From Oopsacas minuta (Eukaryota; Animalia; Porifera), in assembly GCA_024704765.1 (NCBI GenBank), contig JAKMXF010000022.1:124001-188000 (forward strand): 64,000 bases of DNA, read 5' to 3'. Positions 12,838 through 48,700 of this stretch are shown here, piece after piece. The position numbers and the translations under genes were made by a program. Position 1 is the first letter of the stretch. Each line of letters opens with the position of its first letter. Below the pieces are notes generated by a model. That model was not told the DNA's origin. It saw only the letters and a list, made by a program, of their open reading frames with translations, and made no database searches.

Positions 12838-14253
12838 TTACAAGTGACGCAAGTTACCACAATTGTAATGGAAGACCTTGTTGATCAGCATAGGGGAGGT
12901 CTCAGACTTTGGGATAAGCGCTCTCTTCCCAAACTCATTGAGTCCAAAGTTTGAATTCTCAGATTCAATCAGTTCTCGCTTAATTTTGAATGCATCTTGT
13001 CCGATTTGCCCTAGAGTCCCAGTCGTAGGAGAAATCATTTGAATTTCTGAGGGGTCTTGTCTACTTTCAAGTTTCCTCTTGTTTGTGAACCAGGTGTAGA
13101 TTCGGGTCTCGTTTATTCGCTCCCACTCTCCATCTGGGATATTCCAAGGACGGTCCTCTGCAATTGCTTGCTCTGCTTCGTTGCAAATCCGTGCTAGTTC
13201 TAATCTTTGCTCGCGTGTTGGGAAGCGATTCTTCTTGTAAGCTTCAGTGAGGATTTGGATAGCAATGTTCGACCATTTCCATCTAGGTCTTCTTCGCTTC
13301 GCAGACTGGCTCGTACTCGGGGCAGACGGCTCTTGGCGATTCCTAATTTGATGTCTCTCAAACCAATTATACAGTTTGACTCGTTTGGATGTTTTCATTG
13401 GCGTACCTCGGTTGAAATGTTGTGAGAGATGACTTTGATTGAGATTTGTTGCTTCAACTAATTCTCTTTGCAATACATTATTCTGCGTCATGTAACTTTT
13501 GATAATTTTAGCTACAGTTAATGGTTCTTGTTTAAGAAGTTCATTAGCTAAGTCTCCAGGCAATTCGTCGTCCTCTTTTTGCAACTGTGAGTCGTTTCCA
13601 CCGTTTACATTATCCTCACACTCGAGTTGACACTGACCACTACTTGATATTATTTCTTGTTCCTGATTATCATTTTCATCAAGAATTCTCATCAAAATGT
13701 CTTTTGTAATTCCCTTTTCTTTTAGCAACGCTTTTACTGTTTCTCGTTGATCCCAATTAGGGTCATCCTCTCCAGGCTGTTCGGATACAAACACGTTTGG
13801 ATCTGTTACAATTGAGTTGCAAGGGACTGACACCTGTGCAGAGTTTGGGCTTGATGTTGTTACGATCGCTAGAGATGGACTCAACTGGTTCAAATCTACT
13901 TTTATTTCATGTAGAGGAGATTCCGGAAATGATTTACTTTGCAAATCAAAAGCACTCGCATCTCCATTACTGTAATTATTATCAACTGGCTGACTTACAT
14001 TCATTGTAGTGATGTCATTCCCAATCAGTGAAGTGATTTCTGCTGGAGACGTAGGGCTGAACAATTGATCTGAAGCTAGACTTGAGCTAAATATATTTGT
14101 ATTGCAGTCAATATTGAAGGTTATTGTTGTAGATGGATTGGAAGCAAAATCAATTTCATTTTTCTGATCTAAGATCTCCTCTCTATATGTAACCTCGGTA
14201 GTAAAGAAAGTTCCAGTTGGGTTTTCTCTTTCTACCCTATCCTGTATATCCAT
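12838..14253 (-). CDS. HNF1: HNF1-class homeobox transcription factor (POU-like domain + atypical extended homeodomain)
   Basis: VAKIIKSYMTQNNVLQRELVEATNLNQSHLSQHFNRGTPMK matches the HNF1 POU-like domain. The homeodomain RRRPRWKW..FPTREQRLELARICNEAE..[insert]..NETRIYTWFTNKRK has the HNF-type helix 2-3 insertion. The ATG directly follows a ctaac..AG acceptor, so an upstream exon is likely. Confidence 0.9.
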   Translation of the reverse strand: MDIQDRVERENPTGTFFTTEVTYREEILDQKNEIDFASNPSTTITFNIDCNTNIFSSSLASDQLFSPTSPAEITSLIGNDITTMNVSQPVDNNYSNGDASAFDLQSKSFPESPLHEIKVDLNQLSPSLAIVTTSSPNSAQVSVPCNSIVTDPNVFVSEQPGEDDPNWDQRETVKALLKEKGITKDILMRILDENDNQEQEIISSSGQCQLECEDNVNGGNDSQLQKEDDELPGDLANELLKQEPLTVAKIIKSYMTQNNVLQRELVEATNLNQSHLSQHFNRGTPMKTSKRVKLYNWFERHQIRNRQEPSAPSTSQSAKRRRPRWKWSNIAIQILTEAYKKNRFPTREQRLELARICNEAEQAIAEDRPWNIPDGEWERINETRIYTWFTNKRKLESRQDPSEIQMISPTTGTLGQIGQDAFKIKRELIESENSNFGLNEFGKRALIPKSETSPMLINKVFHYNCGNLRHL

Positions 14254-14701
14254 CTGTTTAGTTAGTTAATAAGAAAAGACAACGTCAGCACTACTAATAT
14301 TAAATTTAATATTAACTTTGAGTATTTATACTATGAATCGCTAACAGAGTCAATTGGTTGTAGAGTTAAACTTTAACTAAGTTACTAACCATTTAACTTA
14401 ACTCAAATTTAACCATCTTGTGGGTATCTATTTCAACTCTGTTCTTCAACTTAGATTTATCTGCAAATATGTCTATATTTCATTGGCTTTATTGCAATAT
14501 TATTTACTCGTCAATGATATTAATTTCATAAATGAGCCTGACTGCGATACTTCCACTAAAACTATTATTGAAATTCGAATAATCCACATATTATAAATAG
14601 AGCCAAAAATTCTCAAAAACTAAATTTACAATTGTTTCTAATAACAGATATCTACAAAATGGGTAACACAAACTCACCAGCAATGATGATAGTTTGAAAT
14701 A

Positions 14702-14866
14702 CAGCGGAGTCTCCCAATAATATTTGTGAGCCAGGTGTAGATTCGGCTTCTCAGAGATTGATTAAGTATTATTTACATGTATTATCAACTTATTTCGTTC
14801 CACGAGCTTGTCCGTTGTAGAGGTGTTGTCCGATTTTCGGAGTGTCTGTTTTGGGAGACTCCACTG
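14702..14866. mobile_element. 165-bp Tc1/pogo-type MITE flanked by TA
   Basis: Left end TA|CAGCGGAGTCTCCCAA and right end TTGGGAGACTCCACTG|TA form 16-bp TIRs with 1 mismatch. TA duplication at 14700-14701 and 14867-14868. Confidence 0.85.
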
Positions 14867-15305
14867 TACTGACGTTTAGCGATTTAATACGGAATTCCAG
14901 TTAGAATGCATACACTAAACTAATACTCATCTGTGAATGTTATTAATTAGTATGATCGCAAATAACGAGTTAATGGATCAATAAGAATACCTTTTATGGT
15001 AATGTTTTATTTATTATTATTATTATAATATTTTTCCCAGTTAGTTGAAACATGTTTCTCTCTACTGGCCCACATTAAATTTGGCAAACATGAAGCCACG
15101 AATATAGTCTTATATAATTCTCAGATGCCTTAATTTAATTCAGTTAGACATAACACTGTCCTTCCTCTAGTATGTTCTTCTTTCCATTTCCGTATTATAT
15201 TTTAACTTCATTAGCGCCCCCACGTGTTCATAAGGATGCCCTATGGAACTGATTATTGTCATTAATTAGTTATTTACTATTGTTTGTTTTCTGTTACATT
15301 CAGGT

Positions 15306-15902
15306 ATGGCATCAAAGTCAGCCTTGCGGGTAATGGTATTTCTGGGATCGGGAAGAGAAGGTCGAATGGGAGAGAGAGTATCAACCTTAATAAGGAAGAA
15401 ACTGGAGAGCAAAGAAGTAAATGTTTCTTTTATAGATCCTTTGACTTTGGGTGAACCAGTTGTAAAACAACCTATTCAATTTTTGAAAGATCCGTCTTTA
15501 GTAGCTGATAATTTGAAGAAATATAATGAGGAGATTATCAAATCTGACGCATACTTTCTCATTACAGCAGAATACAATGGATCTATTTGTCCTGGTCTTT
15601 CTAACTGTATTGACTATTTTCCTCCATCTTCATATGAACACAAACCTTTTGCAATATCAAGTTATTCAATGGGCCCATTCGGTGGTGTTATAGCAGGTAG
15701 TTCATTACGTCACGTCATTTCCGTTTTGGGAGGATTTCCTATTGCAGGTTCCCTTGTTATTCCTGAAGTGCATAAAGCTGTGAGTGAAGATGGAGTTGGA
15801 AATGAACGAGTAGAAAGGAACGCTGAAAAGATTGTGAACTCTTTATTGTGGTATACAGAAGCTATTAAGAAGCAAAAAGAAACGAAACCTCTTCCTAAAT
15901 AG
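15306..15902 (+). CDS. NADPH-dependent FMN reductase / quinone reductase (flavodoxin-like fold)
   Basis: FLGSGREGRMG phosphate-binding loop, TAEYNGSICPGLSNCID, KPFAISSYSMGPFGG. A probable 5'-UTR intron acceptor (ttacattcag) lies just before the ATG. Confidence 0.85.
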   Translation: MASKSALRVMVFLGSGREGRMGERVSTLIRKKLESKEVNVSFIDPLTLGEPVVKQPIQFLKDPSLVADNLKKYNEEIIKSDAYFLITAEYNGSICPGLSNCIDYFPPSSYEHKPFAISSYSMGPFGGVIAGSSLRHVISVLGGFPIAGSLVIPEVHKAVSEDGVGNERVERNAEKIVNSLLWYTEAIKKQKETKPLPK

Positions 15903-16826: not shown

Positions 16827-19219
16827 ATGGACCCTTCTCCAGAACAAGAGCCTCTTTCAAACCATTCTACAACCGAGAATTCTACTGTAGAGCTAAATTT
16901 AAACCACACGGACACACCTGAACAAAACTCTCGTACAAAATCACAAGTTGAATCAGATGATGATAAATACTGTTATTCTAACTCATCAGAGAATTCAGAT
17001 TCTCCTGCTCCAACCAGCAAACCTACTACTCCAGAACTATTACTGCCTTTAGAGCCTGAATTCTTTACTGAAACAGGTGAAAGTATTTCTGAAGTAAAGA
17101 GCTCTCATTTGTCTACTGACTCTCCTCAAGAAATAAATTTAGTAGATAAAGATAAAGAGGTTGATGTAGAATGGAATTCCAGTAAGAATTATGATCATCT
17201 AGTCCCCACTACTCCAGAACTCATAATCCCTTTAGAATCCCAGTTCTTTACTGAAGCAGTTGAAAGTATATCCGAATTAAAGAGTTCCCATCGTTCTAAT
17301 GACTCTCTCCCTCTAGAAGTAAGTTTAAGAGATAAAGATAAAGATATTGACATAGAATTGAAATTCAATAAGAATTCTGATCCTCTTCCAATTACCTCAG
17401 ATGATAATACAGAAATGGCAAGCAGTAAAGAAGTAGAAAAAATCCAGTCTCCGAGTGAAAACGTATTCTATTCAGAACTCAGGTCTCAGAAACCATGTTC
17501 TGCACCACATAGTCCTATATTTCCCTCAAAGAGAAAAATACATAGAAAATCATGCCAGGAACCTCCTTCCTTGCCAGAAATTTCTCCTGGTCGATCTTCA
17601 GTCTTCTACGCACCAATAGAACTAGAAGATAAGTTTGACATCATGAGCGGACCATCTATCCCATCTCAATCTATAAAGAGTCCCCCCTCCAAACGACACA
17701 CTAGTTCCCTCTCTTCCAAGCCCCAATACCCAACCTTATTTGAGCTTTCTTACAGTGATTCAGATTCTGTAAATCTTAGCATTGTAGACCGTATAGAGAG
17801 AGAATACAAAATTAAGGAAGGAACTATTAAACTCTTCAATGCAGCTAAGAATATCCAGCAATCCATGGAGGCAGCTAAATCATACTTCACATCAAATGCT
17901 AAGATAATAGCTCTCCTCCGTAAATTGCAATCTTCTAAGGTAGAAGAGCGTGAACAACAGGAGGACAAACCTGGCTCTCTATTGAGTGTTGATGTTACTC
18001 CTGAGCCTTCTAAAGCTACCATTTCAATCTCTCACATAAGAATTCCTCTGGAATGGAAAGAGTTCGACAATATAAAACACCCAATAGAAACGGGTTGGGT
18101 ATTCTGTCTATTCAAGCTAGAAGGAGAAGTAGCTGACACACAAACACTCATATCAGTTGATAGAAGTATTAATGATCTAACATTCCCTGACGTCATCATA
18201 TTCCCTGCTCCTGTCTCGCATGAATTCCGCTTAGAAATAGAAGTGTACTTCAGTCAGGGTCTATTCAGTGGGAAAGATATAGGAAGTTCTAAAGGTATCA
18301 GGAATAGATCAAAAACTAAGGTAAATTAATATATTAATTATAGAAAAGTTATATTATAAATTCATTCTATGTAGTGGTCCACTGACTCAATTTCTAGTCA
18401 AGCCAGCTCCTATGACAGTCCCAGCAACATGCCTCGCTACCATCTAGCCGGGTTCTCATCTCTGAAGCTAGCAGATCTATCTGAAGGTCTTTACACTTAC
18501 AAGCTAACAAAAGGAGCTGTCGGATCTAGTCCCTCTGCTTCTACTCACACCTTCAGTAATCAGCTCCTTCCTCTTTGGGGACAGATATGCAGTCAGATAT
18601 ATGTAGTACCAACAAGCGTTAAGGGAAATAAAATGGAAGGATTTGTTGATATTCGTTCGATGGTTAATGAGTCTCCTGTCTGGAAACATTACTGGTGTGT
18701 GTTGAAACAGACTACTCTATTCTTCTGGAATGCTCCTGAAGATGTTAGAAACTCTACACATATCTCTAATATACCGCTAACTACTATGATGGAAGTTAAG
18801 AGGCCACGTGCTGAAGATGGAACATTCCGGAAAAACAGTTTATTTATCTCAGAATGTGAAACTAAGCAGCACGCTATCTCCTTTGGCAACAAGGAAGAGA
18901 GAGACTCTTGGTGGAAAGAATTATCACGATCCATCAGTGACTTGCAAGTCTGGCGAAATTATGCTACAAAGGTAAGTTCATAAATATACTGTTTATATTT
19001 ACAAATAAATATTATTGTTAATTTCAGTGCCAAGTTGTACCTGATCTGCTAACCAGTAAGAAAAGCTTCAACAGCAGGACAAAGAGAGTAGCCAGCCCTA
19101 TCGAATCTATGAGACAATCTATTACTGCTCCTCCAGAGAGTCACACGAAGAGATTTATAAGTACTGGTAACACAGCTGTAGCTAAATCTGCTAGTAAATC
19201 TCATGTTCCACATGTTTAA
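16827..19219 (+). CDS. RTKN: Rhotekin/anillin-like Rho effector, 3 exons (~16827-18321, ~18375-18971, ~19028-19219)
   Basis: Rho-binding helix (IEREYKIKEGTIKLFNAA..SMEAAKSYFTSNAKI), anillin-homology domain (ATISISHIRIPLEWK), PH domain (WKHYWCVLK..LFFW..EERDSWWKEL). GT-AG introns restore the frame. Confidence 0.82.
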
Positions 19220-24917: not shown

Positions 24918-25943
24918 ATGTCACTACCTCGGGTAACCACTAAAGCGCCTCCTAACGTAGATCCAGTTAAGGCCTCGCCTGCTTACGGAATTTGTGCTCT
25001 ACCTAAGATTAATCGTGAAATAAACCATGAAGATTTACACACGCGACAAAAAGCGCTGAATCTGCTCTCAGACATGCTACACTCTCCCAATAATATAGTC
25101 GAGGCTATTAGAGTTGGAATTGTTAAGAGTTTGAAACTTGTGATAAAAGATACAGACGATCACGTCCGTGTAAAATCGACAGAAAACATGTCCATATTGT
25201 CAGGTCATGCTAAGGGTCGAGAAGCCTTACTAGCAATTAATGTAATAGAACCTCTATCCTCTCTATTTGAGGATAAAGTATATCAAGTACGATATTCAGT
25301 ACACAGTGTTCTGGAGACGCTCACATGCAGCGGAGAAGGCGCTATGTATGCAATAGACTGTGGGCTAATTCCTCGCTTCGTAGAACGATTAGAATTCGAG
25401 GAGAATTCAGTGAAGGAGCTTATCCTTGGTTCTCTTCATAACTGCATGACTAGAGATACAGTAGATGCACTAGGCTGCTCAGCAATGACTACATTAGTAA
25501 GTTTGTTGAAACACGAATCTCCTAAGATTCGTGGGAAAGCAGCTAGAGGCATAATGGCTCTTACTTTCCCTCTGAAGGGAAAGGAGTGTGCTGTTTCTGA
25601 GAATGCTATCCCAGATTTAGTGGAATTACTGGATGATTCAAGCCATGTTGTAAGAGCTAACGCTTGTGGAGCTCTTATGAGTATTACGATTACAACACAG
25701 GGTAAAAAGGAGACATTAAAATGGGGTGTAATACCTAAACTAGTCCCCTTAATCTGTGATCCTACCCCAGAGGTACAGCTTAATGCAATTAAAGCACTTA
25801 CCACTCTCTCTGAACATCCAAGTGGAAGAGAATCTCTCTCAGATACTGTAGATAAGCTGACTGACATATCAGCTAGGTCTAGTGACGAGTATATAAGGAG
25901 AGCAGCTGAAGTAGCTGTTAAGACTATTACATGGAAACCTTAA
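24918..25943 (+). CDS. RSPH14: Radial spoke head protein 14 homologue (armadillo repeats)
   Basis: ARM repeats, N-terminal KASPAYGICALPKINRE, C-terminal RRAAEVAVKTITWKP typical of RSPH14/RTDR1. Confidence 0.85.
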   Translation: MSLPRVTTKAPPNVDPVKASPAYGICALPKINREINHEDLHTRQKALNLLSDMLHSPNNIVEAIRVGIVKSLKLVIKDTDDHVRVKSTENMSILSGHAKGREALLAINVIEPLSSLFEDKVYQVRYSVHSVLETLTCSGEGAMYAIDCGLIPRFVERLEFEENSVKELILGSLHNCMTRDTVDALGCSAMTTLVSLLKHESPKIRGKAARGIMALTFPLKGKECAVSENAIPDLVELLDDSSHVVRANACGALMSITITTQGKKETLKWGVIPKLVPLICDPTPEVQLNAIKALTTLSEHPSGRESLSDTVDKLTDISARSSDEYIRRAAEVAVKTITWKP

Positions 25944-45700: not shown

Positions 45701-48700
45701 AATGTATGTATTTCTCAAAACAAGGTATTTATATACTATGGTGGGTGATGGGAGATGATCTACGTTCTCACATTGATGATACAGTAAATTGAATTCTTTA
45801 ATCTTTCTATAACGTTTTCTATAGAAAGCCAGAAAAAAGTGCTATCTCGCCCTTTGTTTTGTTTCAATCAAATAGTAGTGCAACCAATATGATTTCATAA
45901 TGAAGATAGCACAGAGCTGCTTATCATGTTTATAGATATCTTTGTCACATCATCGCTACTGAAGAGCTCAGTTCTCATATGATTACTATAGCTTATTTAT
46001 TTGCTTGTTACAAGCTTCTTGCTCTTGTTCTGCCAATTCGGATTAATTAATTCACCAAATCATTATTACCTCGTTGACATGTTCAACTCGAATGAACTAT
46101 GAATGATACAATTATAGCACCCAGTTGGGAAATTGATAGAATCCCTCTTAGTACTTTTGTAACGTGAATGTGTTTCTAATTGCAATTTGTATCCTCTTTA
46201 GGAAGTTCAGGTATATCATCTCCTGGAAAAACTACACCAAAACATACTCCAACAAGTAAGTGTATAGCTACTTAGTGTGAACTTTAGACTTATTTATTGT
46301 GACATCTATTTAGGTAATTATAGCCCCGATAAACAGAGAACTGGAGTGGCAAACAAACAAACTGCTTCAACCTTATCACGCCAAATAAATAGTCCGGTTA
46401 GGACACAATCTCCGCAAACAAGTAACCCGATTCGTACTACTACATCTAATGCCAGTGTTGCATCTCGGAATAGGTCCCAAACAGCTGTAACGCCTGTCAA
46501 CACTAGGGAAGTAGGGAAGAATACAACTCCTTCTAAAACTCCCAGTACTGCAACAACACGAAATCCAAACCAGTACAATCCAATAACAAGATCTAAATCC
46601 GTGAATGCTACCATTCCTCCAACCAGACTTGCAACGAAAGTTCAAAGTGCAACATTTCTTCCCCCTGCTCAAAAGAAGGCATCTGCAGGTGCTGCACCTT
46701 TCAAAAGAACTCCAATAATTACAGCTAACCCAGCCAATTCTCCTCATAACAAATCAGCTCAGATTAAATCCACTCAGACCAATTCTCCTCAGACCAAATC
46801 AACTCATGCCAATTCTCCTCAGACCAAATCAACTCAGGCCAATTCTCCTCAGACCAAATCAACTCAGGCCAATTCTCCTCAGACCAAATCAACTCAGGCC
46901 AATTCTCCTCAGATCAAATCAACTCAGGCTAATTCACCCCAGATCAAATCAACTCAGGCTAATTCACCCCAGATCAAATCAACTCAGGCTAATTCACCCC
47001 AGATCAAATCAACTCAAGCTATTCCATCTCTCCACACAGACAAGTCTATACTTCCTCCTAATACTGTTACCTCTCACGACAATGACCCTTTTGGAATTCC
47101 TCTAATCGCACCCACTAGGTAGAGAAACATTATGTTATTAATTATACTCATCGATTGTCTGTTTGATTATTATTGGTATATATAGGCCGAAAGAATACGA
47201 CCACAGACTGCAAGTAAGAAATAAATTACCTGCCAGGCCAACCAGAGGTTTAATTCAACAAAACGCCACTGAAAATCACTTGAATACTATAAAGAGGGTT
47301 AGATTAACTTTTAATACTATTCTTTATCAATTACGTATATATACTGATTACCTTATTCTTAGAAAGTATCAGTATCTTGTCCCAATTCCCCACGAGCTAC
47401 TCCAGATCTTTATTCAGGTAAAATACTGAATTAATTAATGTACATGAAATACAGTTAGCCATACTTATGCATTGTGTTTCATTCTTCTACTTTCTGCCGG
47501 ACTTATTCTATTCAGTAATTACATTGTTTGCACACATTCCATTCAAGTTAGCCCACAAAACACAAAAAGCCATTATTTTAATCTAATTCAAGCTAACAGT
47601 AAGCACCATCAGCGTATAACAAAATAAATGCAATTATATTTGGCATAATCTTTTGATGGTTCATTATTTCATTTCTATAACTATCCTATCTTAAATATTT
47701 GGATACTGTAATGTTAGATATTTGATATACTTAATACTGGTCATCCTAGACACAGCATGAATTTTACAACTTAGTGAAAATGTCTACATTATCTTAATTA
47801 AGATTCTCATTAGATGTACTCCTACGTAATTAATATGCAAGACTTAGGACCTACTTGAAAAAGGACTCTTTCACTAATTTATAGAATAAATTATTCATTT
47901 TTCTGAGAATTAAATGTCTCTATAACATAGCGAATAATTTAATTCATTAATATAAGTCTATCTTAGCTGGAGAAAACCCGATTCAGACAAAACTGGATGT
48001 GAAGACATTCAAATTTCTCCTGAAACCTCGAGATAAAGAATCTCTGCTGATGGGCGCTGCAGAACGTTCTCCAATATACACTTCACACGAACACGTACTA
48101 ATTAAAGTCAAAGGTAATATGCTTTGTTAAATTTGTTTTTGTATTGAAAGTAATACTGCGTAATACTTCCTCACTTTTTATAGGGAAAAGACAAGTTCAT
48201 GCTCGTATTACAGAACCTAAAGTCACCTCGATGAACAAAGGAAACGCATACATTTTCATTTCCCTGACAGAACTTTGGCTCTGGGTTGGCCCAGATGCAA
48301 ATCCGGCAGAAGTTTCAAAGGTAGAAGTGTGTTTCATATTAGTTTCAATATTTCCTCTACTTTTGATTAATTATAATTTGGTGAAACTTTAGGCCAGAAG
48401 TTTAGCAAATCGAATCTTCAAACAGAAGGAGTTAGGTTGTAAAGCTATTTTCTTGTCTGAAATAGATTTCCGAGAACAGAATACAAACACGACTCGGACA
48501 TACGCTCTCTTTAATGCATTGGAGGGAACAGAAAAAGAAATTAGAGGTATTACAGTAGTATACTATACGTATTAGTGAATTATTGTTATTTCAAGCCATC
48601 AACTCCACTGAATTAATTGGGACATATTGCAGTTGTTGCAATTCAATGGCGGATTATTGGTATTTAGTGATTCTGTATTTGTAGCAAGTACAAGTGAAGA

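Follow-up and report, generated by a model that had tools for sequence, protein, structure and literature searches.

A 24-nucleotide copy of an HNF1-class homeobox sequence within a MITE of the glass sponge Oopsacas minuta: a probable scar of templated repair

In the maize Ac/Ds elements and the P elements of Drosophila, abortive gap repair leaves filler DNA at the junctions of internal deletions, and this process is thought to generate deletion derivatives and MITEs. Insertions at double-strand breaks that were templated by RNA or by distant sites have been described in other animals. In C. elegans, templated inserts accompany 24% of the deletions at Tc1/mariner breaks; their formation depends on POLQ (polymerase theta), and the template of such Pol-theta-type inserts is usually located in close proximity to the break (PMC4490562).

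The locus discussed here, from the glass sponge Oopsacas minuta, resembles the C. elegans case (PMC4490562) in that the affected element is a TA-target DNA transposon, that a deletion is combined with an insert identical to a sequence in cis and, possibly, minimal homology at the junctions, and that POLQ is present in the sponge genome. However, the sponge break would have occurred within the element instead of at a site of excision, and the template is 1.64 kb off, whereas the worm templates are close to the break. Dependence on POLQ was established for the worm; in the sponge we know the POLQ gene alone. With abortive gap repair of Ac/Ds and P elements the locus shares an internal deletion beside an intact terminal inverted repeat (TIR) and foreign filler at the junction, but the sponge element was already a MITE and the filler would stem from a neighboring host gene, not from the element itself. 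Pack-MITEs and Pack-TIR elements likewise carry host gene sequence between transposon TIRs. Their fragments comprise hundreds to thousands of nucleotides (exon-scale), in contrast to 24 nt in the sponge, where the chimera has neither transposed nor been amplified. A short patch from a nearby template, microhomology and an apparent cluster of mutations are also features of FoSTeS/MMBIR and of short template-switch mutations; the sponge copy differs from these by its direct orientation and by the distance of 1.64 kb, and nothing observed ties it to replication. A scar of error-prone, templated break repair is a known kind of event, of which the sponge locus is most likely a single well-resolved example.

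The window, i.e. the whole stretch of 64,000 nucleotides that was analyzed (contig JAKMXF010000022.1, positions 124,001 to 188,000), has a G+C content of 36.8%. The published assembly of Oopsacas minuta consists of 365 scaffolds with a total of about 61 Mb and 36% G+C, and contains one HNF-class homeobox gene (PMC10280926). The relevant features are listed below by their positions in the window.

12838–14253, minus strand: HNF1-class homeobox gene, the putative donor; single-exon, uninterrupted open reading frame of 471 aa with the Pfam domains HNF-1_N and Homeodomain
13082–13105, minus strand: putative donor 24-mer, coding for R-I-Y-T-W-F-T-N of homeodomain helix 3
14700–14701, no strand: left TA target-site duplication, seen in the sequence and in the alignment of copies
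14702–14717, plus strand: left TIR, one mismatch to the family TIR
14718–14720, plus strand: TAA, last canonical left-arm bases before the presumed break point, from the 30-copy alignment and the exact-anchored arms
14721–14722, plus strand: orphan TA at the left junction, absent from the MITE consensus and from the gene site, with no assignable origin
14723–14746, plus strand: putatively gene-derived patch, 23/24 identical to 13082–13105
14747–14850, plus strand: body of the MITE plus its right subterminal arm, both canonical; together with the right TIR, 3/120 positions off the consensus
14851–14866, minus strand: right TIR, identical to the family TIR
14867–14868, no strand: right TA target-site duplication, seen in the sequence
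15306–15902, plus strand: NADPH-dependent FMN reductase, the divergent neighbor; 198 aa, Pfam FMN_red 1.2e-21

The reading frame of the homeobox gene matches the POU-like domain HNF-1_N with an E-value of 5.2e-25 and the Homeodomain with 6.8e-06. Its homeodomain is atypical and contains the long insertion between helices 2 and 3 that is typical of HNF1. Compared with the structure of the human HNF1A DNA-binding domain (1IC8), the protein yields an E-value of 3.8e-33. In this alignment R-I-Y-T-W-F-T-N is located opposite R-V-Y-N-W-F-A-N of HNF1A, with W-F-x-N matched, which bears out the assignment of the 24-mer to helix 3 in an earlier note on this DNA. The gene is present as a single copy, and neither a haplotig nor a paralogue of the locus was found in the assembly. 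The MITE is located upstream of the FMN reductase gene, about 440 bp from its ATG. A pyrimidine-rich tract ending in CAG (15275–15305) directly precedes this ATG and resembles a splice acceptor. If it is one, the FMN reductase gene would possess an intron in its 5'-UTR, and transcription would start farther upstream and hence nearer to the MITE.

Positions 14723–14746 and 13082–13105 are identical at 23 of 24 nt and have the same orientation at a distance of 1.64 kb, exactly as originally described. The sole mismatch is an A at 13089 versus a G at 14730 (plus strand), and the longest exact stretch common to both sites comprises 16 nt. Throughout the 61.5-Mb genome (365 contigs, 61.46 Mb), searched on both strands with up to three mismatches, the 24-mer occurs at these two sites only, while the reversed pattern used as a control yielded 0 matches. 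A scan of metagenome contigs for the 24-mer also gave 0 matches. Within the 64-kb window the pair is the top dispersed, non-tandem match; the runners-up are three AT-rich matches of 20–23 nt with 1–2 mismatches, whose partners are tens of kb apart. When the window was shuffled 100 times with its dinucleotide composition preserved, two matches to the 24-mer were never obtained. Together with the lack of a third genomic site at up to three mismatches, this supports the earlier claim that the match is very improbable by chance. A 14-mer shared with window position 25083 was discarded as a chance match in coding DNA; there is no MITE at that position.

The element at 14702–14866 is indeed a TA-flanked MITE of 165 bp, as had been proposed, with TIRs of 16–18 nt (14702–14717 and 14851–14866). 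With up to one mismatch allowed, the family TIR was found at 209 sites in the genome, compared with 6 for a control. A DNA search with the MITE yielded 85 matches out of 151 candidates, and the size of the family is about 100 copies or more. The fetched loci include 22 complete copies, which span 157–186 bp and of which 14 are flanked by TA on both sides. The majority consensus of the family has a length of 186 bp and contains five subterminal GTCCG/CGGAC motifs. A non-autonomous relative of 805 bp possesses the same TIR and GTCCG subterminal motifs (L047:301-1107; G000:C7:24601-25405); a transposase reading frame was not found in it. From the TA target and the CAGT ends, the assignment of the MITE to the Tc1/mariner superfamily is clear. 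The genome contains at least 151 matches to DDE_1 (pogo-type) transposases, many of them with intact frames of 350–660 aa. The MITE TIR was absent within about 1.5 kb of the best 12 of these at least 151 loci, and the pogo label for the MITE family is unproven.

For a comparison of the arms, 30 MITE copies were aligned, and left arms were additionally caught between exact anchors. Normal copies share an identical left arm of 50 nt, and this canonical arm was found in at least 40 other copies. Ten left arms were obtained with exact anchors: eight are canonical with 50 nt, one carries an 18-nt deletion and one belongs to the window copy. In the latter, the foreign segment is confined to 14721–14746 (26 nt, consisting of TA and the 24-mer), which replaces 47 canonical left-arm nucleotides. 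Departures from the consensus amount to 37 of 50 positions in the left arm of the window copy, but to only 1 of 16 in its left TIR and 3 of 120 in 14747–14866. Hence, we see a local rather than a gradual change. The canonical right part comprises 120 bp (14747–14866) instead of the roughly 75 bp assumed before, and what had been taken for AT-rich filler in the left arm is ordinary canonical MITE sequence. Both GTCCG/CGGAC motifs of the left arm and one on the right are lost, leaving two of five.

The 24-mer is absent from the MITE consensus and restricted to the window copy; its presence in the consensus had been named in the earlier note as a refuting result. Genome-wide searches with junction-specific patterns at up to three mismatches revealed neither the patch nor either of its junctions in other MITE copies. 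The idea that the 24-mer belongs to the family sequence was consequently rejected, since no other copy has the patch and at least 40 carry the canonical arm. No larger duplicated piece of the gene was found in the intergenic region, and neither this region nor the MITE shows any other similarity to the gene. The 18-nt deletion mentioned above, in a copy on contig C111 (L002; G000:C111:1901900-1901952), is bounded by two TGTCC direct repeats and is a microhomology-type deletion footprint.

In our best reading, the patch probably dates from the repair of a single break or gap in this MITE copy, in which the gene 1.64 kb away served as the template for copying primed by microhomology. We regard it as a local templated filler because an otherwise young and consensus-like copy combines a deletion with an insertion, because the insertion has a unique match at 1.64 kb and because no other copy shares it. 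Of the two origins considered in the earlier note, a templated filler from transposon repair fits the evidence; a Pack-MITE-like capture does not, given a fragment of 24 nt in an element that was never amplified. The gene codes for the invariant W-F-x-N core, and the one differing base would, in the MITE copy, replace the invariant Phe codon TTC by CTC. From this we infer that the gene presumably represents the original state and that the MITE copy is derived and was later mutated, or was miscopied; copying would thus have proceeded from the gene to the MITE.

According to this repair reading, a MITE copy would first have landed in the DNA that separates the HNF1-class gene from the FMN reductase gene. 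A DNA break or a repair gap would then have arisen in the left subterminal arm of this copy, resulting either from abortive gap repair after an attempted excision or from a spontaneous or replication-associated break, and about 47 nt of the arm would have been lost. A free 3' end may have primed on the HNF1 gene, 1.64 kb off, aided by no more than a few bases of microhomology. Presumably, about 19–24 nt were copied before the strand dissociated and was rejoined to the MITE. The outcome would be a deletion with a templated insertion scar, as expected from polymerase-theta end joining or from synthesis-dependent template switching.

Several observations bear on the details of such an event. At the left junction TTTGT, which is present in the MITE consensus and in the gene, is a possible microhomology, with the orphan TA intervening; at the right junction a single G may have served. 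The microhomologies at both junctions are short and ambiguous. The gene for polymerase theta is full-length in the sponge genome, with one frame of 1863 aa that contains the domains DEAD/Helicase_C, POLQ_helical and DNA_pol_A (L048:1649-7240; G000:C297:108148-113739). The distance of 1.64 kb between template and patch is not close proximity and is longer than usual for Pol theta. Synthesis-dependent template switching, abortive gap repair and a replication-based switch are equally possible alternatives to this enzyme. A hairpin of the canonical left arm as the cause of breakage found no support, since the DNA fold is no better than that of shuffles (z = −0.76). The repair reading is based on a single instance: a search of 29 other MITE copies revealed no locally templated patch within 1.5 kb (0/29).

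An artefact of assembly or polishing by SPAdes, pilon or GapFiller, with the patch being absent in the animal, is unlikely. The assembly was produced from hybrid data with SPAdes (k 21–99), followed by scaffolding and by polishing with pilon and GapFiller (PMC10280926). Such a procedure leaves room for errors, MITEs are repeats and therefore prone to local ones, and there is no haplotig or second copy of the locus in the assembly. However, the exact stretch of 16 nt shared by both sites is shorter than the smallest k (21) and also shorter than the 30-nt overlap of GapFiller. Moreover, reads from the gene would bring gene flanks with them, but the patch is flanked by MITE sequence on both sides, and its one mismatch speaks against mechanical copying. 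This case against an artefact is drawn from the assembly methods and the sequence.

An RNA-templated or distant-template insertion is quite unlikely as well. Here the HNF1 transcript, or an antisense RNA, would have been reverse-transcribed at the break. The distance of 1.64 kb, which is long for direct copying by Pol theta, speaks in favor of such a route. Since the donor reading frame has no intron, templates of DNA and RNA are indistinguishable at this locus. Nothing requires RNA, however, and with donor and acceptor so near to each other, copying from DNA in cis is the best explanation.

We consider it very unlikely that the patch arose by a Pack-MITE-like capture or that it serves as a regulatory module under selection, providing antisense small RNAs against the HNF1 mRNA. 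The geometry would suit both, for the fragment is located between TIRs, and both 24-mers are on the plus strand with the gene on the minus strand; consequently, as stated in the earlier note, the patch would be antisense to the HNF1 mRNA in any plus-strand transcript. A module would further be consistent with the position of the MITE in a divergent promoter region, with at least five intact Argonaute/Piwi genes in the genome and with an RNA of the MITE that is predicted to fold better than shuffles (z = −3.4). This fold is chiefly due to the TIRs, however, and the centroid structure places the patch in one short local hairpin only. The MITE copy, moreover, carries a mismatch to the gene. The fragment is no longer than 24 nt, and the chimera is unique in the genome and was never amplified; it is therefore not a Pack-MITE.

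Chance, i.e. a diverged MITE copy that happens to resemble the gene, is exceedingly improbable. The window does contain three other dispersed matches of 20–23 nt with 1–2 mismatches, and the MITE consensus has the short words TTTGT, AGGTG and AGAT in common with the gene site. Those matches, however, are weaker, rich in AT and widely separated, and the MITE copy is only 2.5% diverged outside its left arm. Converting the consensus into the gene 24-mer would require about eight specific changes within 27 nt, some of them indels, and the one near-copy in 61.5 Mb is just 1.64 kb off. Chance and gradual divergence were rejected on these grounds. The likeness of the consensus to the gene site is at chance level, as 12% of random 48-nt windows of this sequence align to the consensus segment equally well, and therefore the match cannot be attributed to slow drift. 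Family members with states intermediate between consensus and patch were not found. Ordinary gene conversion driven by homeology between consensus and gene was discarded for the same chance-level similarity.

As a repair scar, the patch is most likely neutral. The window copy is probably immobile, judging from the loss of GTCCG/CGGAC motifs and on the assumption that these repeats bind the transposase. Nothing shows that the scar regulates anything. It is highly improbable that the patch is not neutral and that MITE transcripts toward the FMN reductase gene, or hairpins, yield candidate small RNAs against the helix-3 codons. If this were true, a developmental transcription factor, namely the sole HNF-class gene of a glass sponge, would be subject to feedback that is encoded in cis and arose from a repair scar.

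As a natural footprint of templated break repair, the locus is clean and datable, and it comes from a hexactinellid sponge. In this lineage the outcomes of DNA repair have, to our knowledge, not been studied. Since donor and acceptor are unique, the ancestral state is given by the consensus and the POLQ gene is full-length, the event can be reconstructed base by base. A genome-wide census of patches in MITEs could measure the reach of templates in an early-branching animal. The window copy also illustrates that transposon copies can shed subterminal motifs and come to be fixed in a promoter region.

Apart from the MITE, repeats of other kinds were observed in the window. A direct repeat of 41 nt with 5 mismatches is located at 17061–17101 and 17244–17284, with its units 183 nt apart. 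From 46758 to 47016, a 30-nt unit is repeated in tandem in 8.6 copies with 95% matches. Elsewhere in the genome there are about 35 matches to Piwi domains, including a cluster of broken copies on contigs C97, C31, C41 and C113.
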